A model generated the notes under the pieces. It worked only from the letters and a program-made list of their open reading frames with translations, made no database searches and was not told the origin of the DNA. From contig OX337228.1 of the NCBI GenBank assembly GCA_946965045.2, positions 4,588,001 through 4,652,000 on the forward strand: a stretch of 64,000 nucleotides of DNA. Reading direction: 5' to 3'. A program made the translations under genes and the position numbers. Positions 11,082 through 62,050 of this stretch are shown here, piece after piece. This DNA is from Epithemia pelagica. Its lineage: Eukaryota; Protista; Bacillariophyta. The first letter of the stretch is position 1. Each line of letters begins with the position of its first letter.

Positions 11082-11526
11082 TTGAGTAACCAGCTCTACA
11101 ATCTCAACGAGTCTTTGTCTCTAGAGAGGAGGAGTGGAACAGCCTGTGGAGAGATCAAGACCGCGACTCACGATTCACGATATGCCCACTCACACACTTC
11201 TTTGGTTCTTGTGTATGTGGGATGTGGGGGGTGCGCTCTGCACTTCCGTTTCCGGGTCACTTTGCAGTCTGTCACTCTCGTTGCATCTCGTGTATTCTGT
11301 ATTGCATGAATTGGCACTATGACCGGAGATGTATCAACATACCTAGGTAGACAGACAATGAAATGAAGGGTTTCGATCATCATGCAGTTTTGAAACAAGC
11401 TCTCTATAAATGAAACATGTATTACGCAACTTCTTAGCAACCTGTTACATTTCACATCATGTTTACCATGTGAACCGGAGCTTCACGGCCTGAATCCACA
11501 CGGTAGTGATCGCGAGTGTACGTCAC

Positions 11527-13128
11527 CTAGGCAAAACTGCTGTCCGAAGTAGTAGATAGTTCCACGAATCCCGGCGATGGTACTTTGCTACGACGTTTCT
11601 TCATGAAGAAGAAAGCAACTCCGTAACCAATCGCTACCAGAATGAATCCCGTAAGAACACCACTTCCAAACGATGCTCCCGAACTTTTCTGTGGTGCCTC
11701 AACAAGATTCGACATATCTAACTTCTCCTCTGAGCTTTCCGAGCCCACAGTAGGGGTACGGCAAGGTTCTGCTTGCTCTTGCTTTTGTTTCTCAAGTGCA
11801 GCTTGCTTTTTCTCGAGTTCTTCTTCTCGCTTTTCAAGTTCTTCCTGTTGTTTTTCCAATGCTTTTTGTTGTTGCTCAAGTTCTTGTGGGACATTGTCTT
11901 GATTGCCAGTCTCCTGACCACCTTCGTCTCTGTTGAGAAACTCAGCAAAAGTCCGCAAGGCTGGGTCTCGTGGATCATCTTGAGGATTTTCCATGCGTTC
12001 CCAGAACGACTTGCCTTGGGCAGCGCAGGTATTTCGATAGGCTTCATACCGATCAACTGCTTCGGTGAGGCCATTCGTTGACGCTTGTTGTACACAGGAG
12101 TCTGGTAAGGGCATTCCTTGCAAGGTCTTGGGAAGAGACATGACAAATATGGAAAAGAAGGATTCTCCAGCACTGCATTCTTGGGGGTACACGCCACATT
12201 CTGCAGAAGAAATGTCGCTTGAGGCAGGGAGACATTCCCCAAGTTCCCGCAAACCTTCCAAGCACTGGTCAGACAAAATTTGTTCGAGTTTGGAATTCAG
12301 ACAAGCTGCCATTTTGAAAGGCTTTCCATCGACAGGGAACGGCCACAAATCAATAGAACATTCAGGGATCGAATCTGCCATGGCGGAAAAACAGTGACCT
12401 GTTTCTCCAGGGTGGAGTATCACCTCTCGCAACATTTTGCCCAAGGGATGATTACCGAGAACTGCCATGGCACAATCTTCAGGAAGATTCATGGTCGCCA
12501 TATCTAGAGCAGACATGGAGTTGACGCATTTCACCATGGCACCAAGCAAGGAGCCCACCAGATCCTCATCCAGAAGTAATTCATCGTATCCGGAACATTC
12601 TTCAAAATTATCGAAAGCGTTTCGCATGGCTTCCTCTTCTTCCAGTGAACAGGTACGAGAAAGCTTGAGCAAATCCATGACGACAGAGGGGTCGGCTGGG
12701 CCTTCATCACCGAAAGCATCCATAGGAAGTCCGCATTCCGCGAAATCTTCGGCTACAAGTTCCAACAAAGCCAAAAGCATATCATTATCTTCTTCTTCGC
12801 CCCCAAATTCACCAGCACCATACGGATCTCCTCCATCCATACCAAACTGTTCGCCACCGAATTCACCAGCGCCATACGGATCTCCTCCATCCATACCAAA
12901 CTGTTCGCCACCAAATCCTGTTCCTTCGCTTGGGTCTGAAGGATAAATTTCACTCTCCACATCAAATCCCGATCCTGCCCCCTCCAAGCCACCCCCATAG
13001 GGCATCATGTCTTCGTTCTGAGCATCCAAAGAGGGACTCTCATACACTACTCTTCTTTGACCAGTAGCAGTTGCTCCTGGAAGAGAACCAAGGAAGCAGA
13101 CAGCAGTAAGAACGCGATTGAGCAACAT
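11527..13128 (-). CDS. Type I membrane protein, Cys-rich luminal domain, Gly/acidic repeats and coiled coil (paralog B)
   Basis: Signal peptide, same 14-Cys domain, QQQKALEKQQEE coiled coil, TM, GFVEL tail. Confidence 0.8.
   Translation of the reverse strand: MLLNRVLTAVCFLGSLPGATATGQRRVVYESPSLDAQNEDMMPYGGGLEGAGSGFDVESEIYPSDPSEGTGFGGEQFGMDGGDPYGAGEFGGEQFGMDGGDPYGAGEFGGEEEDNDMLLALLELVAEDFAECGLPMDAFGDEGPADPSVVMDLLKLSRTCSLEEEEAMRNAFDNFEECSGYDELLLDEDLVGSLLGAMVKCVNSMSALDMATMNLPEDCAMAVLGNHPLGKMLREVILHPGETGHCFSAMADSIPECSIDLWPFPVDGKPFKMAACLNSKLEQILSDQCLEGLRELGECLPASSDISSAECGVYPQECSAGESFFSIFVMSLPKTLQGMPLPDSCVQQASTNGLTEAVDRYEAYRNTCAAQGKSFWERMENPQDDPRDPALRTFAEFLNRDEGGQETGNQDNVPQELEQQQKALEKQQEELEKREEELEKKQAALEKQKQEQAEPCRTPTVGSESSEEKLDMSNLVEAPQKSSGASFGSGVLTGFILVAIGYGVAFFFMKKRRSKVPSPGFVELSTTSDSSFA
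12803..12916. repeat. 54-bp intragenic tandem repeat (x2) encoding GEFGGEQFGMDGGDPYGA
   Basis: Direct repeat visible at 12803 and 12857. Confidence 0.9.
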
Positions 13129-22544: not shown

Positions 22545-22685
22545 TACCCCCAAGCAGGGGTGAGTCAGTCACGCGTGATTGGATGCAAGATGTGCATCCG
22601 TATACTCACCCCCTTGGCTCGACCTGATCGCTCTCGACATTGATACAAATTTCATTCTACCTCCACGCATCCATTACGGTGGTGG
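22545..22685 (+). repeat. Left TIR of MULE-like element
   Basis: First 22 bp identical to reverse complement of the right end; further blocks GTATACTCACCCCCTTGGCTCGACC and CGACATTGATACAAATT shared. Confidence 0.85.
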
Positions 22686-24030
22686 AGGTGCAGAGGTATC
22701 AAATCGACCTACATCATGTCTTCTTCTTGACATAAACGTCGGAAGCTTTCTCAGAAGCAAACCCGACAAGCCTATGAAGCTCAGGTGGACCCAAGTCAGC
22801 CGGTGGCATCTGCAAGAGCAGGTTTTGATACTGGCATCGCCAAAACCAACAACACTCCTACATCCCAGGCCCGTTCCTCCTCAATCCCCGGTATCACGTC
22901 GTTTCGCCCTCCTTCCTCCGTTGCCGCAGGTGGTATTGATGCTATAGTTGCGAATTTCTCCTACGAAACTCCTTTGGCAAACCGACAGGCACAACAACAA
23001 CACTCAAGCAATCTTGTCAGGTAGGAACCATCCACATTTCTGGACAGCGCTGCGGCCAGCTCGTTGTCCCCTCTTCCCTATTGTCGTTGGACCAGTGTCC
23101 ATTACCAACACTCTGTCGTGAAACCCATTCAAGAAACCATGAATCGACCTGTGACACTCTGTACCAGTTTGAATTTTGCGCCGGATCCTTAATGCTAGCG
23201 GTGGTTTGATCCAAACGGCAGCGTCCAACCGTTCGTTCCGATGGACGTTTGGGGGCTTGAGCTATGTTGCAAGTTGTGTTGTTTTGGCTCGAGGCCGTCT
23301 GCTCCTTGTGTGTTGCCAGGGTCCGTCACCTATACAAAGCCTATGTAGAAGAACGGTAACACACACACATAATATGACCTCTTTGCTTCTATTTGTGTAA
23401 TGCACCAAGCTCCGGTCCTCCGATTCGTCATTGTAATACTCCAAGGTGGAATTGCTGAGATCGCCATAGTCGTCCACGTCTTGCGCATTTCCCACCACCT
23501 TCCAACTCCAAAAGGTATGACTGCCACAGTAAAGGAGGCAATGATACGTGAATGCCTGATGGATTGCAAGGAAAAGGACATGAAACAGGGGCTGGAAATA
23601 GAATAGGGGAACCGATGGTCATCCTTGTCGCTCTTGGGGGGAGAATCATCGTCCTGGGAATTGAGGCCGAACGAAAGGAAGACATGGTGTTGTTGGGAAA
23701 GCGTGTCCAATGACGAGACGACCGCCGCTGCACCAATTTCAGATCACGAAACAAAAGGAAAGATTCAAGCTATCTTTCGTTCACCGAGGAGACACACAGA
23801 CAGAAGAGATAAAAGCTGCATCAGATGGCACTATCAATGGAGACAACCACAACCTTCCATCCTTGTCTTGTCTTGTCTTGTCTTGGTTTATGGTTGTTCC
23901 GGTTCGTGCCTGGTGCAGAAGGTCTGGACCTTTGCATCTAAGGAAGGAACGGTACGCCAGTTTATGGCGGTTTAATTATCGATAAGAAAGCACCCCTAAG
24001 CGCATCCTACTAGAATCATCCGCGCGCAGG

Positions 24031-24080
24031 ACACGCGCACACCTACAAGAACACGCGCACACCTACAAGAACATGCGCAT
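24031..24080. repeat. 20-bp tandem repeat ACACGCGCACACCTACAAGA x2.5
   Basis: Directly visible. Confidence 0.9.
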
Positions 24081-24160
24081 GGCCCTTCCTCACGTTATTA
24101 CTAAAAATGTGCTTTCCAGAACCAGCAAGCGCATGACCCACATTTCACCAACTTCAACAC

Positions 24161-24237
24161 CATGCACAGTCAAGAACCAATAGTCATCACATCCCTCCAC
24201 CTTCATGCACAGTCAAGAACCAACAGTCATCACATTC
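24161..24237. repeat. 43-bp tandem duplication at the 3' end of the RING gene
   Basis: CATGCACAGTCAAGAACCAA at 24161 and 24204. Confidence 0.9.
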
Positions 24238-27200
24238 CCGACAAAATGTATGTCTACAAAGAAACAGTTCGCAATCCACTTTTCTGGTCATACAAATCGA
24301 ACAAACCTCGGGCTTGTATTTTGTCTCAACTCCTCTTTGTTCTAGTGTTGATGGCTTGTTACTCACGGGTGATTTTTTTGATGATTCTTCAGGGCGTCCC
24401 TCAATCGTAGTTGTAGTGTCTTCGAATGTTTTCCTATGTCCCTTTTCAGGGAATCCCTCGCTCGTAGTTGTAGTGTCTTCCGCTGTTTTCTTGTGTCCCT
24501 CTATCTTCTCCGCACCAAACATGTGGATGTTACTCTTGATCTTTTGTCCACACTGGGGAAACCATACATTATGATACTTGAACCGTATTCGTAAGCAATT
24601 TCCGTGAACCAGATGTCCACATGGGATGAGGGTACAGACTTCGCTGTCTGTATCTATTTTCAATGCCCTGTTACAGCATACGCAAGAATCTGGACAATAT
24701 ACAACGGTCGGTAGCAATCGATTTATATCTCTCTTGGAAAGTTTGGAGTCAAGTAACACCTCCTTCGGTTCTAATCCCACCTTCGGGCACGGTATGAACA
24801 ATATGTCACCATCCGTAGTCCACGTCTCTGAACACCCACCATCAGATAGATCGACGTTCTCCTTGTATTCGTATTTATCGGTATCACGTGAAAACCCCAC
24901 TTCAACGGGATCGTCGTCGCTGTTACCATCGAAATTGTCAGGTCCCAACACCAAAGGAGAAATCGAATTGCCACCAACAGCATGCTCTAGTCCTCTCGAA
25001 AATTCAGTATTGTACCGTATTTGATTACTCGAAAAACAATTGGATATCGACATACTCTTGTCTATCTGACCTTCTTTCCGACCCGGGTTTGGTCGACTAC
25101 TCATTATGTTTCCAAGCATTCTGATCACAATAGCTTGTGGCATTGGCTTTGGAGTATCCTTCTTAGGTTCTGGCATTTTCACAATGCGATATCGCCACTT
25201 GTTACATTCCTTGTTTGTATCATGTGTTGTTTCATCTTCTTCCACTAATGATGGGTCATAACATAGACTGACAGGCGGGGCACCTTTTGACGTATTGACC
25301 AGGTCCCATTTCCTTAGTACATGACGCGTCGTTCCTTCCCAGTATTGGTCTGATCGATTATGTATTGGTTCGTAGATATGAAGTATCTTTTTGTCGATTT
25401 CGAAAGCCAATAAAGCTGGGTCGCTGACATCAGTTGCTGTTGTCAAGGCAATGATCGCCAATATCAGTGTGTTTGGATCCTGTTGTCTCCATGATGACAT
25501 AGGAATTTTCTTAGGAAATGGGTTCCTGTTTGCTTCATCAAATGTTACTTTGTCAACATATACTAGGGTCTGATGGTTGTGATGGACCATCAATTTCAAA
25601 CAAGTATAGAAAGACTCAATCGGCATGCCCGTCCTTGAAGTGTTGTAGCAAAGATCTCTCCGACGATGTCTATGTGGGATATGCAAAACACGCGTTGTAG
25701 GGTCCTGGTCATTCATCAACCCACTGTAAGACATGCATAGTGTGCACCTAAATAATGTCTTGATTTCGACATGCGTGTTGTCCTTCCCCATACTCTTAGC
25801 ATACTGGGTTGCTAGCTTCATGGCCGACTTGATGTTCTCGTTGTTTCTGTTAGTTTGTTTTTCCGCGAACTTGTCTAAGTAACCGTCACCAATGTTGTCG
25901 ATGGATTCATTCGAGTCCCATGAGTCTTTTCTTCTCTTCTGGTTTACTATAGGATCAAGAACGTGTGGAATTTCAATGAAAGGCGGTGGTACCACACCAT
26001 CACCTGTCTCCTCATTTCCCTTGTTAATGGAAGCACAACGTCTCTAAGACAAAGAGATCAATCATTTTTGAGATTGTCTAATCCTTCTCGATTCTTGGCA
26101 AGTCGCTCGAACATCTTACCTCGTTGTCTGCGGTTTTTTCATTGTCGTCGCTTATAATCTTCCTGACCTCTTCCACACGGTCTGATTTGAGGGCGACTTG
26201 GTTCGACGTTGTAATGGAAGTTGGTAGTACTTGTTCCTTTCTCTCGTCAGTAGGATCATTACCAGCGACGACCTTCTGTCTCCTTTTTGCCGGCGAGTCT
26301 GTACTCCGACGTTGCACGGCAATTTCTTTCGATTTCCTGGCAGACAGTAACTCTTGTTTTTCTATATAATGCAGTAGATCGTAGAACATACCGCCATCGT
26401 CTCCGTTTCTTCCATATTGTACCAAAGAATCTCTTTCTTCAAGGTACATCTTGAACCATGTGTCAGGCATTGTATACAACAGTGCTTTCTCCATTTGGAT
26501 ATTGGAAATCACGTCCATGTTCTCGTCCGATGTCGATTCTGAGATGAAACGGTGTATGGCCACCATATGTTCGATAACCCATGCGATTTTACCAACAGGT
26601 ACGAGACGCGGTTTCCTGTAAAGGGAGGAATCATCTAGAAGGTATCGTTTCAATGCTTCTCCAATCCCACCGATCCCCTTGCGTGTCTTCTTAGAGACTA
26701 AGCCATGAGAGGAAAGAAATCTGATAATGGTTTGTCTCAGATTCTCAGCACTGTCTATCACTGTCGTCCCAAATGCCTGATTCCAAATATTGGAAACAGG
26801 ACTGTAGAGAGTCTTTTTGAACAACAGTCGAGCAACCATTGGAGTCAACTTGTCATCATCATCCATCTCGTTCTTAATTCTTGTGAAACAGAAAACGGAG
26901 TGACAGATGATATCTTGGAATGCAGGCGAATAACAGATTGGTAGGAATATCTTCACATAATGGCCGTCATGTGGTACCTCCACTGTTGTCCATTTTCCTG
27001 ATTTGTCTTGGAAAACACTTTCATACCAATTGAGGACACTTTCGTATGTAATGGGCATAATACCGGTGTAGTGAGATTCCTCGCTTGTGTGTGTTCGAAG
27101 TGTATGATTGGTACCAGAAACAGTCATAGTCGACACGTCCTTTCTTTTGTTTCGCACTTCATCATTCATTGAAGAAGGGTCACCAGGATTCTTGGCGGTC

Positions 27201-27244
27201 GGTGGCTTTTTGTAGCGAGGGCCCTTGATGCGGTTGCCCGCCAT
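24187..27244 (-). CDS. ~990-aa cargo protein: unknown N-terminus, Ulp1-peptidase-like segment lacking catalytic residues, two RING-like fingers; intron 26044-26119
   Basis: ORFs 26078-27244 and 24187-25995 join in frame through GAG|GTAAGA...TCTTAG|AGA (76 bp); CxxC..CGHxxHxxC and CSIC..CRHTFCREC patterns. Confidence 0.7.
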
Positions 27245-27261
27245 TTTGTACTTGTCACGAT

Positions 27262-28560
27262 GCGCTTTTTGTGTAGCGTCTTTCTTTCAACAACAACAAC
27301 AACAAGGGTAGTCGAGGAAGCGCTTTAATTGTAGCGTCTTTGAGACAACCTTGTGTACTTGTCTAAACAGTAAAAAGTGTGCGCTGAATTGTGTAGCGTC
27401 TTTGGTTTGGTCCTGAACTCTGGTGGTAACAAAACAACAACCAAATCGAAGGAATACACTACAACGCGCTTTATGTGTAGCGTCTTGTTCGTTGTGATCC
27501 AACAATCGGTGCCAGAATTTGCTACTCCAAAACCAGGGGTTGGTTGGTTGTCCAAGCAATCTCGCGACAAGAATAGAACAGAAGCAACTGGCTACCACCG
27601 TGTCACACTGCTTGCTTTGGGTCTGTTCTATTCAAGTCGGAGTATCACGAGGACAGGAGGGTTCTTGATAAACAATCTAACAGATAGCCCGAAACCGCTT
27701 TAATTGTAATAGCGTGATTGGAATGAAGGACAGAGCTGAGTGAAACAAGCAACAATCAGACAGATGCCCCAAGCCGCTTTAATTGTAGCGTGGTGATTGG
27801 AATGGCAGAGCTGCAAGATAGTGCAAGTGTCAAAGATAGGACAAATGTCGACAATATTTCGAATGCTCTGGTGGTCGTTCTTCTTCTTGGGTTCCTCTTC
27901 TTCTTGTTTTCCTGTTGTAGCGGTTTTGGAGTGAAGGTCGTGGTTGAAAGGAAGCAAGCAACAATCAGACAGATGCCCAAAGCCGCTTTAGTTGTAGCGT
28001 GATTGGAATGGCAGAGCTGCAAGATAGTGCAAGTGTCAATGTCTCAAATGCTCTGGCTGTGCTTGAGTTCCTCTTCCTCTTCTTCTGGTGCAGCGGTTTT
28101 GGAGTGAAGTGTTGTAGCGGTTTTGGAGTGAAGGTCGTGGTTGAAAGGAAGCAAGCAACAATCAGACAGATGCCCCAAGCCGCTTTAGTTGTAGCGTGAT
28201 TGGAATGGCAGAGCTGCAAGATAGTGCAAGTGTCAATGTCTCGAATGCTCTGGCCGTGCTTGAGTTCCTCTTCCTCTTCTTCTGGTGCAGCGGTTTTGGA
28301 GTGAAGGTGGCTGAAGAGGAAGCAAGCAACAAAAAGGTGGCTGAAAAGGAACCAAGCAACACTCAGACAGATGCCCCAAGCCGCTTTAATTGTAGCGTGA
28401 TTGGAATGGCAGAGCTGTTAGGTTGGTGAAAGAAGTTGGATAGGTGAAAGGATTGAAAAGGGAATCTCGGCAGAGAGAAAGCAAGCAACAAAAAGGTGGC
28501 TGAAAAGGAACCAAGAAACAATCAGACAGATGCCCCAAGCCGCTTTAATTGTAGCGTGAT
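27262..28560. repeat. Array of ten CGCT-N7-9-AGCG short inverted repeats; distal copies embedded in a ~200-bp tandem unit
   Basis: Copies at ~27262, 27320, 27381, 27466, 27695, 27774, 27983, 28180, 28381, 28540. Confidence 0.85.
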
Positions 28561-29574
28561 TGGAATGGCAGAGCTGTTAGGTTGATGAAAGAAGCTGGAT
28601 AGATAATGGGATTGAACAGGGGAATCTTGATAGCGTTGGGTGATCGATTGCTGTTGTTGCTGCTGCTGCTGTTGTTGTTTGTTGTGGTGTGTTGGGTGGA
28701 GGTGGAGGGAGATGAATGAGCATCGATTCTGGTGGTCGTTGATTGTTGAATGACTAGTATGCTAAGTTGTTCGGTTTTGTTCGATGGATCAGAGTGTTGA
28801 GTTGGTAATCCCCGCGGTTTGGGTGATTGGGAAGGAGGATCCATCTGAGACATTCTTTGGGACATCCATGTGCGTCAGTCTTTCTGGCAGCTGCTGTGTG
28901 ATGTGGTGGGAGTGGAAATTCGTGATTCAAAGGTGAGGGGACAGACGCTTGCGCATGAGGGTTGCGTCATGCGCGTCTCGGGGGGGGGGGGTCGAGCGCG
29001 CCAGATAGTTGTAGTGCGCATTATCGGAGTGTGGCGCGCGTTATTCGTGGTTTGATCGCGGGCTTGTGCGCATTAAAATTGTTGCATGCGCGTGATAGTC
29101 AGCTCGATCTCTAGGACTAGCTAGAGAAATGTGCATTGTTAGACCTAGATTTGCAGATTTAGTTGGGAAAGCAGGATTATAGTTAAAAACTGCGCATATA
29201 AAAATAAACTGCGCATAAAAAATTTTAATTCGGCGAATTTTTTCTAGAAATTCGCTTTTGGGGGTGGAAATCAAGCGCCAGGGCCCATTTCCCTCCTTAG
29301 ATGTGGAAGGCCGCTCGGTATTATGGGGAGAGAATGAGATGGCGGAAGGGACGTAATAGAGCGGTTTGGGAAGTCGGTGGATGGATCTTCATCTCCCTCG
29401 TTGTTGTCGCGAAATGTGGTGTTTTGCTGGTTGTCCATGCTCGTGAAGAAGGACAATTGAAGGCAACACCGAGTAGGCAGAAGTGTCGTCGATAGGATGG
29501 GAAAGCTTACGAGGGCTTGGGTGCGGTTGGACAACCTTCACGGCGGATGAAATCGACCTCACTAGTTTGGCACC

Positions 29575-29719
29575 GTGGTGGATGCGTTGAGGTAAAATGC
29601 AATTTGTATCAATGTCGGAAAATCGCCATTTTTGGGTGGTCGAGCCAAGGGGGTGAGTATACAGATGTACCTTTAGGTACGACCTATGTGCGACCTGGAC
29701 TCACCCCTGCTTGGGGGTA
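29575..29719 (-). repeat. Right TIR of MULE-like element
   Basis: Reverse complement of 22545-22685. Confidence 0.85.
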
Positions 29720-50197: not shown

Positions 50198-50801
50198 GGT
50201 GTCCACGCTTCACCTCTGCAAAACTGTTTGTTGTTGAACGGGAATCAGGCCAATCCTTTAGCTCAACAAAACCAATCCGTGCGGGGCCGGGCCGGATTTG
50301 GTTTTGGAAATTGTGCCTAACGCCGTCCTTACGCATTCGCAAAACAAATCCAAAAGACCGCGCCTTTTCGAATCCTGTCCCCCATCCTCCCCCACCCTTC
50401 ACTTAGAAAAATTGAATACTAAAACTTTTGGGTACTAAGGAAGCGCAAGGATACCGTTGAAGTCGAACGCCCGTCCATCATGTGTCACGCCCGCCCACCA
50501 TGTCGAACGCCCGCCTGACATATTCGAAACTGTAGGCAGCCTCTACACTAGCAAAAGTAAAACACTATCCCTAATGAATTTCCTGGATTTGTTCGAACAA
50601 ATCCAGAGTTCTGGATTGGCTGGAACAAATCCGGAAATGCTCTTTTACCCGGATATATGACGTCAACGAGACGCAAAATGCTGACGTGCACGAAATTTTG
50701 ATTTGGTTTTGCGAGCTAAAGGATTGGCCTCAGGGACACCCAGGATTTTTGTGGTGATCCACAGTTTTCTGTCTTGTCCGACATCCTACCAATGGTAACT
50801 T

Positions 50802-52162
50802 CCCTCGGTATCAGTGTCCACTGCTTAGCTGTTTTTTGTCTGTGCCATCATTTTAGGTTCCCAGGTGGACACAGACATCATTTTTTTCTTTTGAGACGAA
50901 TAGAAATGATCAAATGGCAAATTGGCACGCATACCCAGCTGGAGTTTTCACAGTTTGAAACAGACGCATGCCCAGCAAGCGGCCGTGCGTGGATAACTGC
51001 TGGTTGCTCCATAATTCATAATGACAAGCACACAATTCTTTTCTCTTGTTGCCGAAGCACATCGTACAAATGGCATTCCAGGTGAGTGTGATCCGTTGCC
51101 AATTGCCATGACAATTACATAGCTCATGCTCACTGATCACTGACACTTGTCACTTTTGTTTGCTCTGCTCATGGGAAGAGAGGCGATCATCTGTTGTGTC
51201 TCTGGGTAGCTCATTACGTGCCATTCTACATGTCGAAATGACGGATTTTTGATAACTTTCATTCGATTCATAAACAGACTTCAGACATTGTTTTCTTTAT
51301 ATACTAGGAGTAGAAATAGAACTCAAGTGCTATTCATTCGTAGAGTTCAGTGCATTCTGAATAATTTGTTGCAGATCTCTTTTCTGTTTTGAGCATGGCA
51401 ATGACTCTCAGTTTCACCATGAACACAAGCAGCTCTCACACGCTACAGCTACAACTTTTGACTCTATGAACTGATAGACATGGAAAGTAGGGTGTGGCAA
51501 GAGCAAGAGGGCTTCCCATCTATTTGAAGCAAAAACAACAAAGTGTTCGGTCATTGAGAAATGAGATGATGCTACGACCTATGACGATAGTGAATCATCT
51601 ATCCTACAGAAGACATGAAAGCAACCAACCAACAATCAAACAACAAAACAATTACTCCTACATCAACAAATGAGACGGGTAAGATACTCCAGTTGACATC
51701 AAGCGGCTTGTTCCTAGTCTACTCCTTCAACAAGAGACAAGCCAAAGGATCATGCATGAACAAGAGGAAAGATTGCAGCAGTGATGAGTGAGAAGAAAGA
51801 AAAAGAAACAAGAAGATTAGAAATAAGCCACAGTAGTGAGAAGTGAGAAGCAGTTCAGGTTCAGCCCAGCATGTTGCATCCATTGTTCTCACCTCATGTC
51901 ATGGTCAAGCATTTGGCTCGGTTTTTGGTGTTTTGTGACAGAGGAGGACGGGAGGGTTGCCCAAAAAATTTGAATCGTGGTGACCAGAGGACAACCACCA
52001 ACCGTCAACTATCACATGCACGCTGGCCTTGCTCCAACCCTGAGGAATTTTATTGGGTAGATAGACAGACGAAAAACATAAAATGCTGGCTGTGTCCACT
52101 TGGGAACCTATGAAGGTGGCACAGACAAAAAACAGCTAAGCAGTGGACACTGATACCGAGGG
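50802..52162. mobile_element. Nested 1361-bp non-autonomous TIR element in the left arm
   Basis: Ends CCCTCGGTATCAGTGTCCAC.../...GTGGACACTGATACCGAGGG, 46 bp perfect and ~82 bp total; absent from the right arm. Confidence 0.85.
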
Positions 52163-52348
52163 ATGATGAACGCCGTCCGATACCAAATATTTCTTAACAC
52201 GACTTGAATCATCCGTTGGATGTTGCCAATCGACTTTGACCGTTACTTACACGTTAAATCAAGATATCCTACAGTTTTTTACATCTATATAGTGTATAAA
52301 TTAGTGTAGAATAATTTCCATTATAGAGTAGAAGTACACTAATATAAT

Positions 52349-52658
52349 GTGTGGATGTTTGTGGACGTTTGTGGATCCACACACATCCACACGCATCCAC
52401 AGACATCCACACACATCCACAGACATCCACTGTGGATTTTTGTGGATATTTGTGGATCCACATTTATCCACAAATATCCACATTTATCCACGTGGACGTT
52501 TGTGGATCCACATTCATCGACGTGGACGTTTGTGGATCCACAAACGTCCACGTGGATCCACATGTGGATTTTTGTGGATTTATGTGGATTTATGTGGATT
52601 TTTGTGGTCCACAAATATCCACAAAAATCCACATTCATCCACAATCATCCACACAAGA
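52349..52658. repeat. GTGGAT/ATCCAC (GTGGATCCAC) subterminal array, left arm
   Basis: Dozens of GTGGA(T/C) and (A/G)TCCAC units; mirrored at 59247-59404 and 60112-60263. Confidence 0.92.
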
Positions 52659-52691
52659 CTCGCCGAAGTAGAACTCAGAACTCGCACCACC

Positions 52692-53441
52692 ATGAGCAAG
52701 AAGACCACCGAGACCGAGACGGAGGCAGAAAGTGGGTGGGTCAATTGGCGAAATTGTCCGGCACGGGAGGTCCTCCTTCAGGACCTGGAGCCAGGGGGTC
52801 TGCTTCACGACATGGACCATGTCGGAGCAGACGTCCTGTTCCATTTCTACAAATTAATGCCGCAATTCAACGACGTCGGGTTTGACCAGTTCAAGGCCAG
52901 ACTTGCTGACCATCGGAAGCAGTCTTGGAAGAAGCACGAACTAGCATCGAGGGATGAAGATGCTTGTGCTCACGATCGGCGGTTGTTTCCGCCGGAATAT
53001 CGTGATTCAAGGGGCAAGCTCAAGTTTGATTTGCACCCTGCCAAGGCCCTCCTTCGGAAAGACGTCACCGAGAAGGTGCATCTGGGAATGAAGCCGTCGG
53101 AACTACGCAAGACGAGGATGGAGTACCAGGAGTTCGACGCAAAAACGTTCAAGGATCGAATTTATCAAGAAGTTCGACGCCAAAAGTACCTGAACCACTT
53201 GGCAATTGAGCGCGAAAACAAGAAAGCAGCAAAGAAACAATCAAACAATACACCGATGCTGGGAAAGGCTCACTTTCACCAATACCTCCGGATGTTGGGG
53301 ATAGATGACAAGGCACCACCAAAAATGGATGTGGACGAACCACCGCAAAGCAAAAAAGGAAAACGCCGTGATCCACACAAAACACGCAAGAAACGAGTGC
53401 CCAACCCTGATGACGACAAGAAAAAGAAAAAGAAGAAGTAG
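52692..53441 (+). CDS. Transposon partner ORF (249 aa), tandem duplicated helical domain plus basic tail
   Basis: Internal repeat W.NCPAREVLLQDL..FKARL / FDLHPAKALLRKDV..FKDRI; convergent with the transposase. Confidence 0.8.
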   Translation: MSKKTTETETEAESGWVNWRNCPAREVLLQDLEPGGLLHDMDHVGADVLFHFYKLMPQFNDVGFDQFKARLADHRKQSWKKHELASRDEDACAHDRRLFPPEYRDSRGKLKFDLHPAKALLRKDVTEKVHLGMKPSELRKTRMEYQEFDAKTFKDRIYQEVRRQKYLNHLAIERENKKAAKKQSNNTPMLGKAHFHQYLRMLGIDDKAPPKMDVDEPPQSKKGKRRDPHKTRKKRVPNPDDDKKKKKKK

Positions 53442-53501
53442 CTAAATACGATAGTAGGCACATTGTATACGAATCCACTCCTCTAGAGTAGTACTACTAA
53501 T

Positions 53502-54404
53502 TTAAGGCTCAAATAGAACCAGCGTTCCACAGTCGAGTCCGTATTGGACTGTCACTGCAACGGCACGGAATGCGAGTCCATGCTTGTCGTCTGAGTGCCT
53601 CCATGTTTGGTTCATGGAGGCATAGAACGACATCTTGCCATTGAAGCTTTCATGGCGAAGACGGATGCGACTCTTCATGTTGTTGGCCTGTTTCGTGTCG
53701 TGATGGTTCGGCCAGGCAACCTTCTCCTTAAAATCGTTCTTGATGTAGCCGCGATCGCACACGGCAAGCTTCCCCTTCGGAAGCATCGCGAGCACACCCG
53801 ATCTTGAGAGCATCTCCTTGTCGCCCATCCCTCCGCGCACCGGCCCGTAGATGTGCACGCATTGCATACGCTGGGCTGCAAGTACAATCTGGTACTTGAG
53901 TCCCCCATGCGCATGCTTCTGCGTATAGTTCTTGCGGTCGAACGGAAGAAACTCGGTCTGATGCTTCCGTTCCCACGTCTTTTTGTCAACGCCATCGACT
54001 GAGATGGCAACCTTTTCCGTTGTAGGACAGTTGAGGGAAGCTGGCCAGTAGATGACCTTGCTTTCAAGACTCGCAAGGTGCGCAATCCAGTCCCAGAGGC
54101 GCTTGCCCTGGGCATATTCCGGACACATATCAAACTTATCACCTAGCTGTGTCGCATTGCGTGGGTAGTTCCATAGAAAGTAGTGGGCCACTAGGAACAT
54201 CTTAAGGCCACGACGGACTTCTTTGCTTGTTAGAGTCCCGTGGCTTAAGTCAAACCACTGAGATGCCATGACCAACGGATCAGCCCCATAGTGGGCTTTA
54301 AACTTTTCAATGCGTTTGGCCGAGTTGGACCTCTTTGAGTCAAGCTTGAGCAGACTCAGCCCATACTCCAGCACAAAGCTGGGATCCAAGAGTTCGGGCG
54401 CCAT
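53502..54404 (-). CDS. DDE transposase, PIF/Harbinger/IS5-like (DDE_Tnp_4-type)
   Basis: ISVDGVD, KHAHGGLKYQI, GP..G..D..ML, CDRGY, RHESFNG; intact 300-aa ORF. Confidence 0.85.
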   Translation of the reverse strand: MAPELLDPSFVLEYGLSLLKLDSKRSNSAKRIEKFKAHYGADPLVMASQWFDLSHGTLTSKEVRRGLKMFLVAHYFLWNYPRNATQLGDKFDMCPEYAQGKRLWDWIAHLASLESKVIYWPASLNCPTTEKVAISVDGVDKKTWERKHQTEFLPFDRKNYTQKHAHGGLKYQIVLAAQRMQCVHIYGPVRGGMGDKEMLSRSGVLAMLPKGKLAVCDRGYIKNDFKEKVAWPNHHDTKQANNMKSRIRLRHESFNGKMSFYASMNQTWRHSDDKHGLAFRAVAVTVQYGLDCGTLVLFEP

Positions 54405-54956
54405 CCTTTATGCGCCATAGTGGTCACGTTCACGCAACAACCAAACGAGCAGGGTGACCGGCACTCGTGAAGGGCAGAGGAAAAAAGGTCACGAGTAGGT
54501 GGAGACAATCAACAATCAACACATGAAGGTGTCAGACTCACGGGGGAGAGCAACTACAAACTCGTAGAGTGAAACGAATACATAAACAAAAGAATCTTCT
54601 TTATCATTGGCGCTTAAACAACAATCAAACAAAGTCGGTTTCCAAGATTGGTCTGGCGGCTTCGCAATTCGTGTCAAGGAAGTGCATTGTTGTGTTTTTG
54701 TCCCTCGTCCACGGTTGCATAAGATTTCTAAGATGGACGACCACGGCATAAAAATACATCTTCCACCAAGTGAAACCGAGAACGGGAAGAAGGAGGACGA
54801 GCTCCGAGCAATACACCCCGTCAAGAGGTTGACCTTGCAAGCCTCTGCAACAGGAAACCGGGAATCTACGGCCAACCGGCATCTCGGACGAGGCGACAAC
54901 TGCAATACTGGTGGCAGGCCGCGAAGAGACGTCCCATCCAATCTTATATTGGATTC

Positions 54957-56321
54957 TTGGCCTCGTACGGCGTTATCCGTGGGAAGGCAACCGAGTCGGA
55001 ACTTGCCTTGGAACTTCTTCAAGGTGAGCAAGAAATCATCCGGGCGACGAGGCGGGCCGAACAGCAACAGCAACAGGAACCACAGGAACCACACGAACAG
55101 GAAGAACAAGAACCACAGGAACAGACTGCTGTGAAGACCAAGCAGACAAGCAACAAGAAGAAGAAGAAGAAGAAGAAGAAGAAGAAGCACAAGAAAACCA
55201 TGGGCAAGGACGACGACACAACCACCATCACCGCTTCCACGAGCACAAGGAAAGCCGACGAGGACGACTACGACTACTCCTCAGATGAAGAGAGTAGCAG
55301 CAGCAGCAGCAGCAGCAGTGATTCCTCCTCCGATGACTCCTCGGCCTCGTCGTCTCGAAAGAAGAAGAAGAAGAAGAAGAAGAAGTCAAAGCGATCGAAG
55401 AAACATCGCAAGAAGAAGTCGAAGAGCAAGTCGCGGAAGAAGCTCTCTTCAAAGCCGAGAAAGGCTGAGAGGATGGAGCCTCCCGACACCGTCGAAACAG
55501 AGAAGGCCTTCGTCATCCCTCCCTCAGCCGCTGCCTCTCCTGCCATTCCGGAAGGGATGCTCTCCCCTGTCCCTGGGCCGAACAACGCTGTCCATACTCC
55601 CCACCAGAAATCTGCCCTCAAGAACCGACAGGCAACTCCCGGCCAGCAGCAGCATGTCTTCGGCGAGGTATCGGCCTTGAATGTGGACAACTACGACTAC
55701 GTGCCGTGTGCCACCGACTACCAGGATGGAACCTTGGAAGCACCTTGGATCATTATTGTGTGTGAAGATTTTCCTGAGCGCCACCGAGGCTTCGACGTGC
55801 AGAAGGTGTCGCAAATTGTCCACCAAAACTGGCAAAGTGAAGGATATCACGTCCGTTGCCATGTGGCGACTCCTGATGTTTTTTTGTGGTCCGCAACCGT
55901 CCCTAAAGAAATTGGCGCCGGTCGCGTTATTCGGGTCAAACAGCCCTCCCAAGATTATTGGCTGCGAGACATCCAGGTGTACCATCATGGGCAGAAGGAA
56001 ACAAGCGCACGTGTAAATTGTAAGTCAACGGAAACTGCGCACAAGGTGACCCAGACCGCGATCACGGCGAACAAGGAGGCACGCTTCTGGGCCTACACTG
56101 ATATCGTTTTCCCCCAGCGACTGGACAACCAGATTTTCTCGGGTAATGAAACCAAGATTACGATGCGCCACATTCCAGTGAAGATTCCTCCCGGTCACGC
56201 AGACAACAAGTACAAAAAAGACCTCACAAGCACTGTTATCTTCTGGCGCATCGCGATCAAGGGCCTGGGCGACGAAATCCAAGGCACAGAAAGCCATGAA
56301 GATGCCCATGCCTATGACTGA
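54957..56321 (+). CDS. Cargo hypothetical protein with poly-K/poly-S low-complexity N-terminus and globular C-terminus (start uncertain)
   Basis: Long ORF inside the element; no recognised family. Confidence 0.65.
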   Translation: MASYGVIRGKATESELALELLQGEQEIIRATRRAEQQQQQEPQEPHEQEEQEPQEQTAVKTKQTSNKKKKKKKKKKKHKKTMGKDDDTTTITASTSTRKADEDDYDYSSDEESSSSSSSSSDSSSDDSSASSSRKKKKKKKKKSKRSKKHRKKKSKSKSRKKLSSKPRKAERMEPPDTVETEKAFVIPPSAAASPAIPEGMLSPVPGPNNAVHTPHQKSALKNRQATPGQQQHVFGEVSALNVDNYDYVPCATDYQDGTLEAPWIIIVCEDFPERHRGFDVQKVSQIVHQNWQSEGYHVRCHVATPDVFLWSATVPKEIGAGRVIRVKQPSQDYWLRDIQVYHHGQKETSARVNCKSTETAHKVTQTAITANKEARFWAYTDIVFPQRLDNQIFSGNETKITMRHIPVKIPPGHADNKYKKDLTSTVIFWRIAIKGLGDEIQGTESHEDAHAYD

Positions 56322-56409
56322 GATATGCACGACAACAACATGAGAGTTCTACATGACAACATACGTATTTAGGATTAGCGACTAGTGGTGATAAAAAAGA
56401 TCTAAGAAA

Positions 56410-56934
56410 TTATTCGTTCATGTTACTATTACCGTCGTCGTTGCTGCGCTTCTTCTTCTTCTTGAGCTTGTACTTCCTGAAGTACACCTGGTCTTCGTTG
56501 TTGTGTTTCTCGATGGCCAGATCGATGTAGGTCATCATCATCCTGGCCAGATTTTCTCCTCCCTCACCAGTGGTCGTGATTTCTTCAAACTCGGCCAATT
56601 TGGCCGCCAAAGACTTCATGAGGAGGTGCACGTCGGCGTTGTTCTTGAACACGCCCTCCTCGTAGCTCTCGGCAGGCCCCTCGAGCTGGGAAACGAGCAC
56701 GAAGCTCTCGTGCTTTACCCTCGTACCCTTCAGCTTACCCTTGTCATCCTTGAGGATGACGTAGGTATAGCACTGCGTCGGCTGCTTGTCGTTGTTAAGC
56801 CAGCCCTTCTTCTTCTTGTAGACTCCACTGATGAACTTGATTTGCTCACCCCTCTTGTCCTTGAGGTCTTTGTCGCTTGCCATGGTCGTTTCTTCTTCTG
56901 TATCCTCCTCTTTTTTCTTCTTCTCGAAGCTCAA
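56410..56934 (-). CDS. Cargo hypothetical basic protein with KOW/SH3-like N-terminal motif
   Basis: GEQIKFISGVYKKKKGWL resembles KOW; K-rich tail. Confidence 0.6.
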   Translation of the reverse strand: MSFEKKKKEEDTEEETTMASDKDLKDKRGEQIKFISGVYKKKKGWLNNDKQPTQCYTYVILKDDKGKLKGTRVKHESFVLVSQLEGPAESYEEGVFKNNADVHLLMKSLAAKLAEFEEITTTGEGGENLARMMMTYIDLAIEKHNNEDQVYFRKYKLKKKKKRSNDDGNSNMNE

Positions 56935-57049
56935 CCTGCTTGTGATCGCCCCACGGCTATTGATTGATTGTTGTATTTTGTTCAGCGAGTTGTTGATGGT
57001 TTTGATCGCATTCTCTTCTTATCGCCACCCAGCGATGACAGGATAGCAT

Positions 57050-57340
57050 CGATTCCCTTGCGTGAGATGAGAGAATTCTTTCATTCTTGTGTGGATGTTT
57101 GTGGATGTTTGTGGATGTTTGTGGATGCACGCGTGCAATGTGGACGTTTGTGGATCCACAAAGCCCCACAAGCGTCCACAAACGTCCACGTGGACGTTTG
57201 TGGATCCACATTCATCCACTGTGGATGTTTGTGGACGCATGTGGATCCACAAACATCCACATTGCACGCGTGCATCCACAAACATCCACAAACATCCACA
57301 CAAGAATGAAAGAATTCTCTCATTACACGCAAGGGAATCG
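57050..57340. repeat. ~290-bp imperfect palindrome built from GTGGAT/ATCCAC units
   Basis: CGATTCCCTTGCGTG..GAGAATTCTTTCATTCTTGTGTGGATG at left mirrored by ..AAGGGAATCG at right; arms ~110 bp. Confidence 0.92.
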
Positions 57341-58556
57341 TCAGAGCACGAGGATCACAACAACAATCAAACAACGACAGAACAACGACCACCACCAATC
57401 TACATAGACAAGAACACGAAAGCTCCGCGGAACGAACCAAGTGTACCGTGAGGGAATGGACGGGCCGGGATGAGTTGGCTAGTTTCACAGACGTACGGCA
57501 AGTTTGGGAAGTCTTCCACTTTTTGGTTGGAACGAAGCAACAAGAGGATCAAGACTGGAGTCGAATGATGATGGAATAAACGAAGATTGCAGGCAGTGAC
57601 GACAATGGAAGATTCGACATGGATGGGTAAGGCATGGGAGGGCAACGACAAGGACACACGGCAACCAGACTGATTGTTTTGACCCAACAACGAAACCAAC
57701 CACAACAAGAAAGCAACAAACAACCACCTCCCAAACAACAAGAAGCAACATGAATGCAACAAGGTGATCTGATTGTCTCGGATCTGGCCTTCTCATCTTC
57801 TTGTCCTCCTACAACCGGTGTTGCGACATCTCCAAACGCAACAATCAACCTTCTTTCGACAACGAAACAATCCGCGGTCAACTCCTCGTTTCGCCCGAAC
57901 GAAGCAACAGCGACAACAACAACGGCAACAACAACAACACCATACTCAACAATCAATCGAAATCGTTGAGAAGGCAATAGTAGTGGCGATGGCGACAACC
58001 AGACGCGACAACGACAACATACGGCAACAACGACTAGCGGCAACAACGACAAGCAGCGACAACGACTGTCGCAGCAACGACAACGACGGCAAGCGACTAG
58101 CAGCGACAACCACAACCACAAGTGGCAACAACGACAGCGAGCGAAAACGACAACGACAGGACTCGGTGAGAACGACAACGAGCGAAAACGACAACCATAA
58201 CCACAACGAGCGACAACACAAGCGGCGACAATGACAACGAACGAAAACGAGCGACAACGACAGCAAGTGGTGACAACGAAAACAATACCACATCCAACAA
58301 TCCGCTCCTCCTTTCGGTCGAGCGAATTAATCCGTGACAATGACACTATCCGCAACAATCAAATCCTTCTCCTTCTTTCTCACGGCCTCGGTAGCAGCAC
58401 CATACTAAACAATCAGCTCCTCGTTACGCCCGAACGAAACAAAGGCAACAACACCACGACCATACTCAACTAGACGCAAACTATTCGGACGAGCATCATG
58501 CCAGCGACAACACTGCAAACAACATTCCTGTTGGACTTGAATGGATGTAACAACAA

Positions 58557-59213
58557 TCAACTAAGGCAAACGGATTGACGACAAGATTTTGAGCATCGGG
58601 TGGATGAACGTGAACGATGCACATTTAAGCTAGATTTCCTATGGACTATGCAACTCGTAGAGTAGAGGAGGCGATTTGTACTATTTGAGCTAGTTGTAGG
58701 ATAGGATTGCTTCGCCATATCCCCTGTGAAATCTTGTTGCCCAACACCTGTCAGCGGTAGCTCCGCTTTAGGATCATGGGACGCATCATTTGACAATGAC
58801 AGAAAAGAACGAGAATGTTTGATTATTGCGTTCACAGTTTGTAGAGGGGTCGAAACCAACCCGAAACCAACTCGAAACCAACTCGAAACCACAGTTGAAT
58901 CACGATATTCCGGCGGCAACAACCGCCGATCGTGAGCACAAGCATCTTCATCCCTCGATGCTAGTTCGTGCTTCTTCCAAGACTGCTTCCGATGGTCAGC
59001 AAGTCTGGCCTTGAACTGGTCAAACCCGACGTCGTTGAATTGCGGCATTAATTTGTAGAAATGGAACAGGACGTCTGCTCCGACATGGTCCATGTCGTGA
59101 AGCAGACCCCCTGGCTCCAGGTCCTGAAGGAGGACCTCCCGTGCCGGACAATTTCGCCAATTGACCCACCCACTTTTCGCCTCCGTCTCGGTCTCGGTGG
59201 TCTTCTTGCTCAT
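58557..59213 (-). pseudogene. Truncated inverted copy of partner ORF (first ~106 codons) fused to unrelated sequence
   Basis: Near-identical to 52692-53010; homology stops at CGTGATTCAA. Confidence 0.85.
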
Positions 59214-59404
59214 GGTGGTGCGAGTTCTGAGTTCTACTTCGGCGAGTCTTGTGTGGATGATTGTGGATTTATGTGGATTTTTGTGGATATTTGTGGACCA
59301 CAAATATCCACAAAAATCCACATAAATCCACAAAAATCCACATGTGGATCCACGTGGACGTTTGTGGATCCGCAAACGTCCACGTGGATGAATGTGGATC
59401 CACA

Positions 59405-60108
59405 CACGTACGCCACGGGGTACTGAAAACAGGTATTTGGTACTCTACTACAGAGGATTTGGCACGTGCCAACTTTCGACTCTAAGAAAAATAGTATCAC
59501 AATAAAAACTATAGGTCAATGTGTACGAGTAGAGAGAGCGGTGATGCAGAAAAGTGAGCTCGATGTTTTTCGTTTTGTTGCGATGATCGACGCGGAGCAA
59601 ACTTTGATGCCTGCTCATTCTCCACCTTGTCGTTGTCTTCTGCAAGCAGCTTATGCTTCCCGAGCTATCCATTGGGACTTGGGGCTTGGGGTTGCAAAAT
59701 GGAAAGCTCTCATGAGCTTTTCATCTTGCAGGGCACTCGCAAAAGCACTGATCACCCGTGCTGGCTCAGCGGGCCTTTCAAACATGCCTACCCCTACTCC
59801 CCGAGATAACAGAAGATGCTATGGTCCGATGGGTAAACGCTTCTACAAAGTTGCTCTATACATACCTATCCATAGATCTGTTGAATCGTTTACCCATTGC
59901 TAAAGTAGAACTTTCATTACACACCATCTTCATTCGAGGAAAAAGCAATTCGGAGAAGCAAACATGGCGTAGGTTACACGATCGTTTACGATTGTTGTTT
60001 CAGAGGCCCGCCGCACGCGCAACAACCTAGCGCTTTGATAACATTATAAACTGTACGTCCTTGAACAAAATAATACTACAGTACCGTTCACCGGTCTTGG
60101 GGTACGTG
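59405..60108. mobile_element. Nested 704-bp CAC-ended non-autonomous element (CACTA/CMC-like) in the right arm
   Basis: ACA duplicated at 59402-59404 and 60109-60111; ends CACGTACGCCA / TGGGGTACGTG; left arm shows the empty site GTGGATCC-ACA-AACGTCC. Confidence 0.88.
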
Positions 60109-62050
60109 ACAAACGTCCACGTGGATAAATGTGGATATTTGTGGATAAATGTGGATCCACAAATATCCACAAAAATCCACAGTGGATGTCAGTGGATGTG
60201 TGTGGATGTCTGTGGATGCGTGTGGATGTGTGTGGATCCACAAACGTCCACAAACATCCACACATTATATTAGTGTACTTCTACTCTATAATGGAAATTA
60301 TTCTACACTAATTTATACACTATATAGATGTAAAAAACTGTAGGATATCTTGATTTAACGTGTAAGTAACGGTCAAAGTCGATTGGCAACATCCAACGGA
60401 TGATTCAAGTCGTGTTAAGAAATATTTCGTATCGGACGGCGTTCATCATACCGGTAAGTTACCATTGGTAGGATGTCGGACAAGACAGAAAACTGTGGAT
60501 CACCACAAAAATCCTGGGTGTCCCAGGGGACGGCCAGATCCTGGGGGTCCACGTATCCTTATCCTTATGGGTTTTATTATTTTGTGTCGTAGGACTAGGA
60601 GAGTAGGGGTAGCGGACGAGAATCGCCCCAGAAAACCCGCTAGATGATCCAGCTATCGGCATCCACCTATTGGCAAGGCTTTCATCTTTCATGGAATTGG
60701 TTCAAATTACGAGCTCTCTTAATGAGTCTCATCTCATCGTGTGAAATTACTGGAAACGTCTAGCTAGGAGTAATATTTTAGGGAGGTCGATAAAAGCCAC
60801 AAAACTTTCTGTGCGTTCATAAATCGGGTGAAGATCTCCAGTTGAGAGAAAGGAAAGACCAATGGGAGTGTGTCTGGGAAAGAACGGTTGCGTTCTGGTA
60901 TGTCTCTTGTTTCCGATCTCTAGGGAACCAGAATTTCAGGATCTGTGTGATTTTCGTCATGACTTTGCTTTGAATCCCGTGTATTCACTTCTTCTCATTT
61001 CTTTTGTCTTTAGTCTCTTTACTTCGATCCGGAAGACCCTTCGAAAAGCTAATGAGTCCAGTGAAGATACCCGATGCCGATCATTCCGACGTCTCCCTTC
61101 TCCCTTCCCATTCAAGAAGGTGAAGTTCCGGCGGAGACATTGCGATCAGAAGTTCTTGGAGATTGGCAGCGACGTGGGAAGACATCATCAGAAAGATCCG
61201 AGAAAAGATCGGGCAGGGATCAGTCGCAGAGACAAGTTTGCCCCACTCCAAAGCGGGAGACGTACGATCTTGTTTCGTGTCTCGTGTCACATCTTTGCCT
61301 CTCCACTCTTGACATGCGCTTGACACTGACACCTACGTCTGGGACGATACACCAGGTTGTCAAGGACATCAGAGGAAGTGGTGGGGGAAGCGGTCTCGAA
61401 CATTGGTATACTCTTCAGAACATCAAATCGTATATAGTATTTGATTATACTATGTGATAATATGAGAACACCGATGGAGTTTGGAGACCACACTTGTGCA
61501 TTCGTATTTTCACTCCCGTACGTGTAACGGCACCGAAACTTTGGTACTTTAAAAATTACTGTTGTACTTTTACTGTGACAGTCCAGGGTCTTCGACCTTC
61601 TTCGCTCACCCCGATGCATCGCCGCTTCTATTACCCATTGTTCTCGCACACAAAAAGAAACAATCCTGGAGCAAAGACCAAACAAAGACCCTGTTTGTTG
61701 CGTTGGCAATCTTGTCGTCTCTGGTTGGATTGAGGACGGTCTCATCGATATAGTGGGATAATTGATATTCTATGCGTAACGATTGGTAAACAGATTTCGC
61801 GATTTGGATCCGCCCAAACCACCGCTTTGGCGGGCTTCGCTCAACACGCACCACCGAGAAGATTTTCCGAAGATCGCAAAACACGAACACGTCTTTGTCC
61901 AAACAGAACTGATCGTGATTGAGTCCATCGACTTCTTAACTCAAGTCTCAGTACGCTCATCGTTCACGTTCCACTAGTCATTCGACGTTCCATCTGAGCG
62001 CGACGGATTTCCCTTCCTGATCTTTCTCCACAGAACATTCGTACGATCAT

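Follow-up and report, generated by a model that had tools for sequence, protein, structure and literature searches.

Giant inverted arms at a diatom PHIS/Harbinger-type transposon locus probably reflect a one-site fusion of two left ends

A locus in the diatom Epithemia pelagica raises the question of whether inverted arms of ~920 bp, seen in one copy of a PHIS/Harbinger-type transposon, are the normal ends of its family or an accident of a single site. The locus lies in a 64,000-nt stretch of contig OX337228.1 (assembly GCA_946965045.2, positions 4,588,001–4,652,000 of the forward strand), hereafter the window, to which all coordinates without a locus name refer. A preliminary description of this DNA, made from its letters alone, read the locus as an apparently intact transposon with giant composite terminal inverted repeats (TIRs) and two “cargo” genes, belonging to a fold-back-like PHIS lineage. 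We favor a different reading, to which we assign a probability of roughly 0.8, namely that this is an inverted heterodimer, particular to one locus, of a cut-and-paste transposon of PHIS/Harbinger type with four genes.

The arms themselves are real. Direct reading bears out the CAG on both flanks and exactly 68 identical terminal bases at the two ends. Once two nested insertions (50802–52162 and 59405–60111) are taken out, the left arm (50734–50801 plus 52163–53010, 916 bp) and the right arm (58895–59404 plus 60112–60523, 922 bp) are near-identical as first described, aligning end to end with 11 substitutions (98.8% identity) and differing by a 6-bp loss at the site of insertion 1; self-BLAST matches of the arms (E from 0 to 1e-29) are well past chance. 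Between them lie four open reading frames (ORFs): ORF2, the transposase, ORF3 and ORF4.

Near-identical transposases of the same family (family A) were traced to five loci in the public assembly ENA ERZ21939226 (L001, L005, L006, L007 and L008). L007 (5594 bp) and L008 (5574 bp) are complete elements with 12-bp TIRs and CAG duplications, and their right end diverges from the left end past base 12. L001 has the same build, with a nested insertion of ~340 bp in its left end (L001:12115–12456) and one mismatch in its target-site duplication (TSD; AAG versus CAG), and L006 has its right end cut off. These copies show that native family A elements are ~5.6 kb long and duplicate a CWG (CAG or CTG) target; each end has a 12-bp TIR and, further in, an array of decamer repeats. 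The fifth locus, L005, is the window’s own locus (flanks 99.4–99.9% identical), yet it is without insertion 1 and the ORF3 deletion described below and carries single-nucleotide polymorphisms (SNPs), and therefore represents another haplotype or strain. Transposase genes of the six copies are 1–5 differences per 903 nt apart, which bears out the recent activity supposed at the outset.

The right arm has a separate origin. A chimeric ORF, in which truncated ORF2 runs into filler sequence, forms a protein cluster of two members, the window locus and L017. At L017:9528–12578 stands a solitary 3051-bp non-autonomous derivative with CAG on both sides, made up of a left end, truncated ORF2, 1.55 kb of filler and a right end. 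It matches the window in inverted orientation (57090–59409 at 97%, 60109–60524 at 98.8%, filler at 99%), so that the locus consists of an autonomous copy plus an inverted derivative, tail to tail. The alignment shows a full-length copy (50734 to ~57200) joined to the inverted 3.05-kb derivative (Table 1). A 30-bp palindrome at the join is found in both parents, 344–404 bp in from the right end, and ~0.9 kb, made up of both outer right ends, is gone (7728 bp after subtraction of the insertions, versus 5594 + 3051). Furthermore, diagnostic alleles at arm positions 334 and 916 identify the right arm with L017, and three variants (150, 259–260 and 681) that both arms hold in common and five other left ends lack suggest exchange between the arms after fusion. 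The derivative in turn looks like a template-switch product because its filler opens with subterminal-type repeats of a sister family; the filler also contains a dispersed repeat and has matches elsewhere (L004:7373–7450 at 80%, and in L010 and L015). Collectively, the giant arms are most probably a single-locus fusion of left end to left end for which both parent types are identified.

Table 1 Coordinates of features at the composite locus
Feature	Position	Strand	Basis or remark
Left CAG target-site copy	50731..50733	+	Read directly; clade-wide CWG TSD
12-bp TIR of family A (GGACACCCAGGA), left end of autonomous copy	50734..50745	+	Common to both ends of L001, L007, L008, L017
Nested insertion 1, non-coding TIR element, 1361 bp, CCC..GGG ends	50802..52162	.	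Polymorphic: missing from same locus in L005
Left subterminal TGTGGA/TCCACA decamer-spaced array, probable ORF2 binding sites	52350..52653	.	Sequence; related families with own motifs
ORF2 partner, 249 aa, convergent to transposase	52692..53441	+	AlphaFold model
DDE transposase, 300 aa, triad D137/D217/E252	53502..54404	-	Pfam DDE_Tnp_4 E=9e-8
ORF3, 538–554 aa in intact copies, frameshifted here	54733..56321	+	Comparison with other copies
ORF4, 157 aa, weak KOW/SH3-like N-terminus and helical C-terminus	56410..56883	-	
Fusion zone, two right subterminal arrays joined inverted	57050..57340	.	Identical in L005
Perfect 30-bp palindrome, point of strand switch	57175..57204	.	In right array of autonomous and non-autonomous element
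Non-autonomous derivative (3.05 kb) in inverted orientation, with left end, truncated ORF2, filler and inner right end	57175..60523	-	97–99% to L017:9528-12578
Derivative’s 1.55-kb filler	57341..58894	.	99% to L017
First 106 ORF2 codons within right arm, running into foreign filler	58895..59213	-	
Nested insertion 2, 704 bp, CACGTAC ends, ACA TSD	59405..60108	.	Dispersed; in L005, not in L017
Second left end with 12-bp TIR, bounding the composite on the right	60512..60523	-	Runs on as left-end sequence, not family right end
Right CAG target-site copy	60524..60526	+	Read directly

Most likely, a break at the site would have been repaired by synthesis-dependent annealing that copied from two templates. 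One strand would have begun copying at the left end of the derivative, moved inwards and annealed via the self-complementary palindromic array, both right ends being lost at the join; exchange of sequence between the two left ends, and two further insertions, would have come after the fusion. The product could still be mobile, as both ends keep TIR and array. Several observations weigh against the heterodimer reading or its details. The protein-cluster look-ups, in which the composite occurs once, covered one other assembly and may have missed a second copy. The 30 bp ahead of the palindrome match the derivative’s array and not the autonomous one, and therefore more than one slip would have occurred. 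The fold matches of ORF2–4, considered below, are all weak (Z < 7). Lastly, no empty allele was found, the flanking genes being single-copy in the sequence collection examined, so that repair in place and formation elsewhere followed by a jump are not separable.

This last point leaves room for a tentative alternative with the same structure and another history, in which the left–left composite formed elsewhere, moved here as a unit and thereby founded a subfamily with long TIRs. The CAG matches on both flanks, the TIR and full subterminal array kept at both ends, a sister family (L020) with long TIRs and a CAG TSD, and the similar roles played by mPing ends (PMC9921582) would all suit such a history. 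Matching CAG is no proof of a unit jump, however, because repair in place also keeps CAG and two independent CWG insertions match half the time, and the missing second composite copy counts against it as well. The same weakness of the TSD match taken alone, given that all insertions use CWG and independent flanks agree about half the time, would accommodate an unlikely third history of two independent insertions in opposite orientation, one autonomous and one derivative, after which a deletion removed both right ends together with the intervening host DNA. Long tail-to-tail repeats are prone to deletion; yet this history requires two insertions close together, and signs of missing host sequence could be shown neither way.

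A fold-back-like family that normally possesses ~920-bp TIRs and captured cargo genes, essentially as first proposed, is now very improbable. The arms exist and long-TIR four-gene families occur in the same assembly (L020), but long TIRs are not common to the copies of family A: L001, L007, L008 and L017, that is, three two-ended copies and the derivative, do not share these ends and combine 12-bp TIRs with another right end, which refutes the proposal for this family. The right arm moreover is part of a separate derivative, and ORF3 and ORF4 are conserved over families and samples. Least probable of all is an assembly artefact in which two repeat copies were collapsed or wrongly joined inside a palindromic repeat array, because L005, from a second assembly, shows the same junction zone between the same unique flanks while differing from the window in the 1361-bp insertion, a 37-bp deletion and SNPs.

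TSDs were read from the flanks of many insertions rather than from an empty site. The CWG duplication, proposed earlier from one locus, is perfect (CAG or CTG) at 14/15 of the clade’s two-ended insertions, and the bases around the target weakly favor Y-CWG-R (22/28 flanking bases, P = 0.002). In the related families B, C, D and L002 the TIRs are perfect and 8–15 bp long, and with CWG counted as TSD the TIR starts with GGA in family A and with GAA in L002 and L018. A GGG-starting TIR with another TSD was considered and rejected, as duplication of the flanks is seen only with the GGA start. The motif repeated inside the ends is in most cases particular to the family, that of family A being the decamer-spaced TGTGGA/TCCACA array. 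Long arms do occur in the clade, and both ends are seen for one such copy: L020:8598–14306, of a sister family (38% transposase identity), has 701-bp TIRs (97.9%), a CAG TSD and the reshuffled gene order ORF4, transposase, ORF3, ORF2. L019 has one end in common with L020, its other end being broken by a retroelement.

Turning to the genes, the intact DDE transposase and convergent partner were described correctly; “apparently intact” fails for ORF3, where a 37-bp deletion near 54806 leads to a stop after 133 codons and has a junction found in none of five other copies. The assignment to a PHIS/Harbinger-type transposase also stands, in that the DDE_Tnp_4 score is over the curated cut-off, the domain is matched by 29/29 aligned homologues, the D137/D217/E252 triad is conserved in their alignment and weak IS5 NCBIfam matches are present. 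Comparison with a canonical Harbinger fragment in L006 gave no significant similarity, a limited comparison with one 221-aa fragment. The AlphaFold model of ORF2 (predicted local distance difference test score, pLDDT, of 92) contains two tandem three-helix, helix-turn-helix (HTH)-like bundles, whose fold matches are weak and non-discriminating (FF, homeodomain, GARP/Myb, SANT and Tc3 paired domains, Z 4–6.5); a Myb/SANT Pfam match was found in 0/92 homologues. ORF2 may bind the subterminal arrays, in the role that the Myb-like partner has in Harbinger, with the transposase presumably doing the cutting.

For ORF3, the fold was modeled from the natural intact L005 allele and consists of a confident N-terminal helical bundle, a low-complexity linker and a low-confidence C-terminal sandwich, best matched by small heat-shock/alpha-crystallin (HSP20-like) and CS domains (Z up to 6.8). 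The KOW-like matches of ORF4 are sub-threshold (uL24 E = 0.11, KOW E = 0.05). No credible Pfam family was found for ORF2, ORF3 or ORF4, and no significant PDB sequence match was obtained with profiles of the transposase, ORF2 or ORF4. Likewise, Atlas feature searches for ORF4 and the ORF3 C-terminus came back blank, Foldseek returned no match at E ≤ 0.001 for the ORF2 and ORF3 models, and the Atlas fold search stayed at a template-modeling (TM) score < 0.35.

ORF3 and ORF4 were initially taken for cargo. Both occur in all six related short-TIR families (identity across the six: ORF2 43–49%, ORF3 32–42%, ORF4 30–36%), and dN/dS (the ratio of non-synonymous to synonymous substitution rates) between families B and E is about 0.09 for the transposase, 0.14 for ORF2, 0.16 for ORF3 and 0.05 for ORF4, with dS of ORF3 and ORF4 near saturation. 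Among 80 mostly short metagenome loci, ORF2 is found in 17, ORF3 in 10 and ORF4 in 12, and the contigs L036, L037 and L041 hold all four genes together in differing orders. Given their occurrence in every family and on unrelated metagenome contigs, and the purifying selection on them, the two are core genes rather than cargo. With the transposase and ORF2 they make up the gene core of a diatom PHIS lineage that has four genes and targets CWG, in which ORF3 and ORF4 would be conserved accessory subunits, probably for complex assembly or chromatin access. L036 (2846–3484) and L041 (3283–3780) add a SET-domain gene above the Pfam cut-off and are thus five-gene relatives. A distant relative at L021:9408–20667 has yet another gene order and a retroelement inside ORF3.

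The wider distribution was assessed from protein relatives. With the ORF2 profile, 2346 proteins are recovered from a set of 50%-identity representatives (E ≤ 0.001), and named ORF4 relatives come from Entomoneis. Epithemia clementina has a transposase relative at 59%, and in Epithemia the transposase is accompanied by a convergent ORF2, ORF3 remnants and CTG-flanked ends. At L018:12058, 14295 and 16531 in E. clementina, a left end with the start of the partner gene occurs three times with a ~2.24-kb period and the same flank. In a quick tree of transposases, built from homologues only (no Nuwa or Repbase references) after exclusion of rows <270 or >360 aa, the short-TIR families of the assembly form one group (support 97) within a larger group that includes the Epithemia protein. 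No viral relatives were found, and a 32% transposase relative at L102:4001–4600 lies on a contig labeled as an uncultured Desulfobacteraceae metagenome-assembled genome, which may be mis-binned eukaryotic sequence or a bacterial relative. No description of a four-gene diatom Harbinger was encountered in the literature searched, in keeping with the earlier suggestion of a possibly uncharacterized lineage; Repbase and most subscription journals were beyond that search, so absence is not shown.

Both nested insertions are elements in their own right. Insertion 1 has TIRs of ~90 bp and no TSD, and in the window copy it replaces a palindrome, ACCGGT; a second copy is present at L020:495–1870. Each of the two known copies lies in subterminal sequence at the end of a four-gene Harbinger-type element, with AT directly after, and the element is possibly target-specific. 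Insertion 2 would be CACTA/EnSpm-like, judging from its ends, and its called ORF belongs to a 9-member protein cluster spread over several contigs. Elsewhere in the window, another inverted-repeat pair at 22545–29719 (~140 bp, 74%, ~7 kb apart) surrounds two ORFs and a repeat array with a ~200-bp period at 27670–28630, and two tandem paralogous host ORFs occupy 9882–13128 (66% DNA match between 10447–10811 and 12275–12639).

Described Harbinger systems need two proteins; here four are kept under purifying selection, with gene order shuffled across a transposase divergence of 33–65% identity. This opens the question of which extra proteins a cut-and-paste transposon of eukaryotes needs and whether those are anti-silencing factors; the alpha-crystallin-like fold and the SET gene of some relatives hint at a role in chromatin. 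Because both types of parent element are available, the locus further offers a clean example of a short-TIR transposon gaining kilobase-scale inverted arms in one step, and a warning that long TIRs from a single copy need not be a family trait. More speculatively, and with the odds against the proposal as a whole, the clade could be a PHIS group not yet described, in which a transposase, an end binder with tandem HTH bundles, a protein combining HTH and alpha-crystallin parts and a KOW-like protein, sometimes with a SET enzyme, are encoded by four genes as a single obligate module acting as a transposon-encoded assembly or anti-silencing complex, with end replacement via palindromic subterminal arrays as the source of long-TIR families such as L020.

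Compared to known systems, the element combines an IS5/Harbinger-type DDE transposase with its triad, TIRs and a 3-bp TSD, within the 0–3 bp of PHIS (the PIF/Harbinger group having TWA; Han et al. 2015, PMC4482050). We accordingly place it by sequence in PHIS, where it would work like a two-component PIF/Harbinger cut-and-paste element. It resembles that group in its DDE_Tnp_4 transposase, second helical DNA-binding-like ORF, TSD length, G-starting TIR and size of ~5 kb, but differs in targeting CWG rather than TWA (all TSDs are CAG or CTG), in four conserved ORFs instead of two and in having no Myb/SANT Pfam match; TIRs of up to 1042 bp are on record in the group (PMC4482050). NuwaI, suggested at the outset as a relative, has been found in animals only and has a CWG TSD, two ORFs, a Myb/SANT partner and TIRs of 12–61 bp that usually start with GGG (PMC4482050). 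The TSD agrees and the 12-bp TIR, which starts with GGA, falls within this range, whereas the two-ORF capacity and animal host range do not fit an element with four ORFs and a diatom host; the link is one of TSD, and membership is not established. Pangu/Harbinger2 elements (ANT TSD, two ORFs; PMC4482050, PMC12730594) are alike in a second ORF without known motif, short GG-starting TIRs and hosts that include heterokonts, and unlike in TSD (here CWG) and ORF number (here four). Near them Kojima places HarbingerS of oomycetes, a stramenopile multi-gene Harbinger encoding a SET-domain protein (Kojima and Jurka 2014, as cited in PMC12730594). Compared by that description, the relatives L036 and L041, with four core genes and a SET gene, point towards HarbingerS, although family A has no SET gene.

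Two further parallels concern partner proteins and ends. In the Arabidopsis IDM complex, HDP1/HDP2 (a Harbinger-derived transposase and DNA-binding protein) act in anti-silencing with the alpha-crystallin-domain proteins IDM2/IDM3 (PMC5339849). The predicted alpha-crystallin-like fold of ORF3 (Z 5–6.8) offers a weak, fold-level analogy to these host genes, with no homology shown. With respect to ends, both of those of mPing act alike (PMC9921582), and in Galileo TIRs are extended by repair or conversion and copies chimeric between subfamilies occur (Marzo et al. 2013, PMC3573991). Galileo is of the P superfamily and its longest-TIR copies are without transposase, whereas the composite here keeps a complete transposase and partner; the two are alike in that inverted recruitment of internal sequence lengthens the TIRs and in their chimeric copies. 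The composite itself is a one-off rearrangement with precedent in Galileo.

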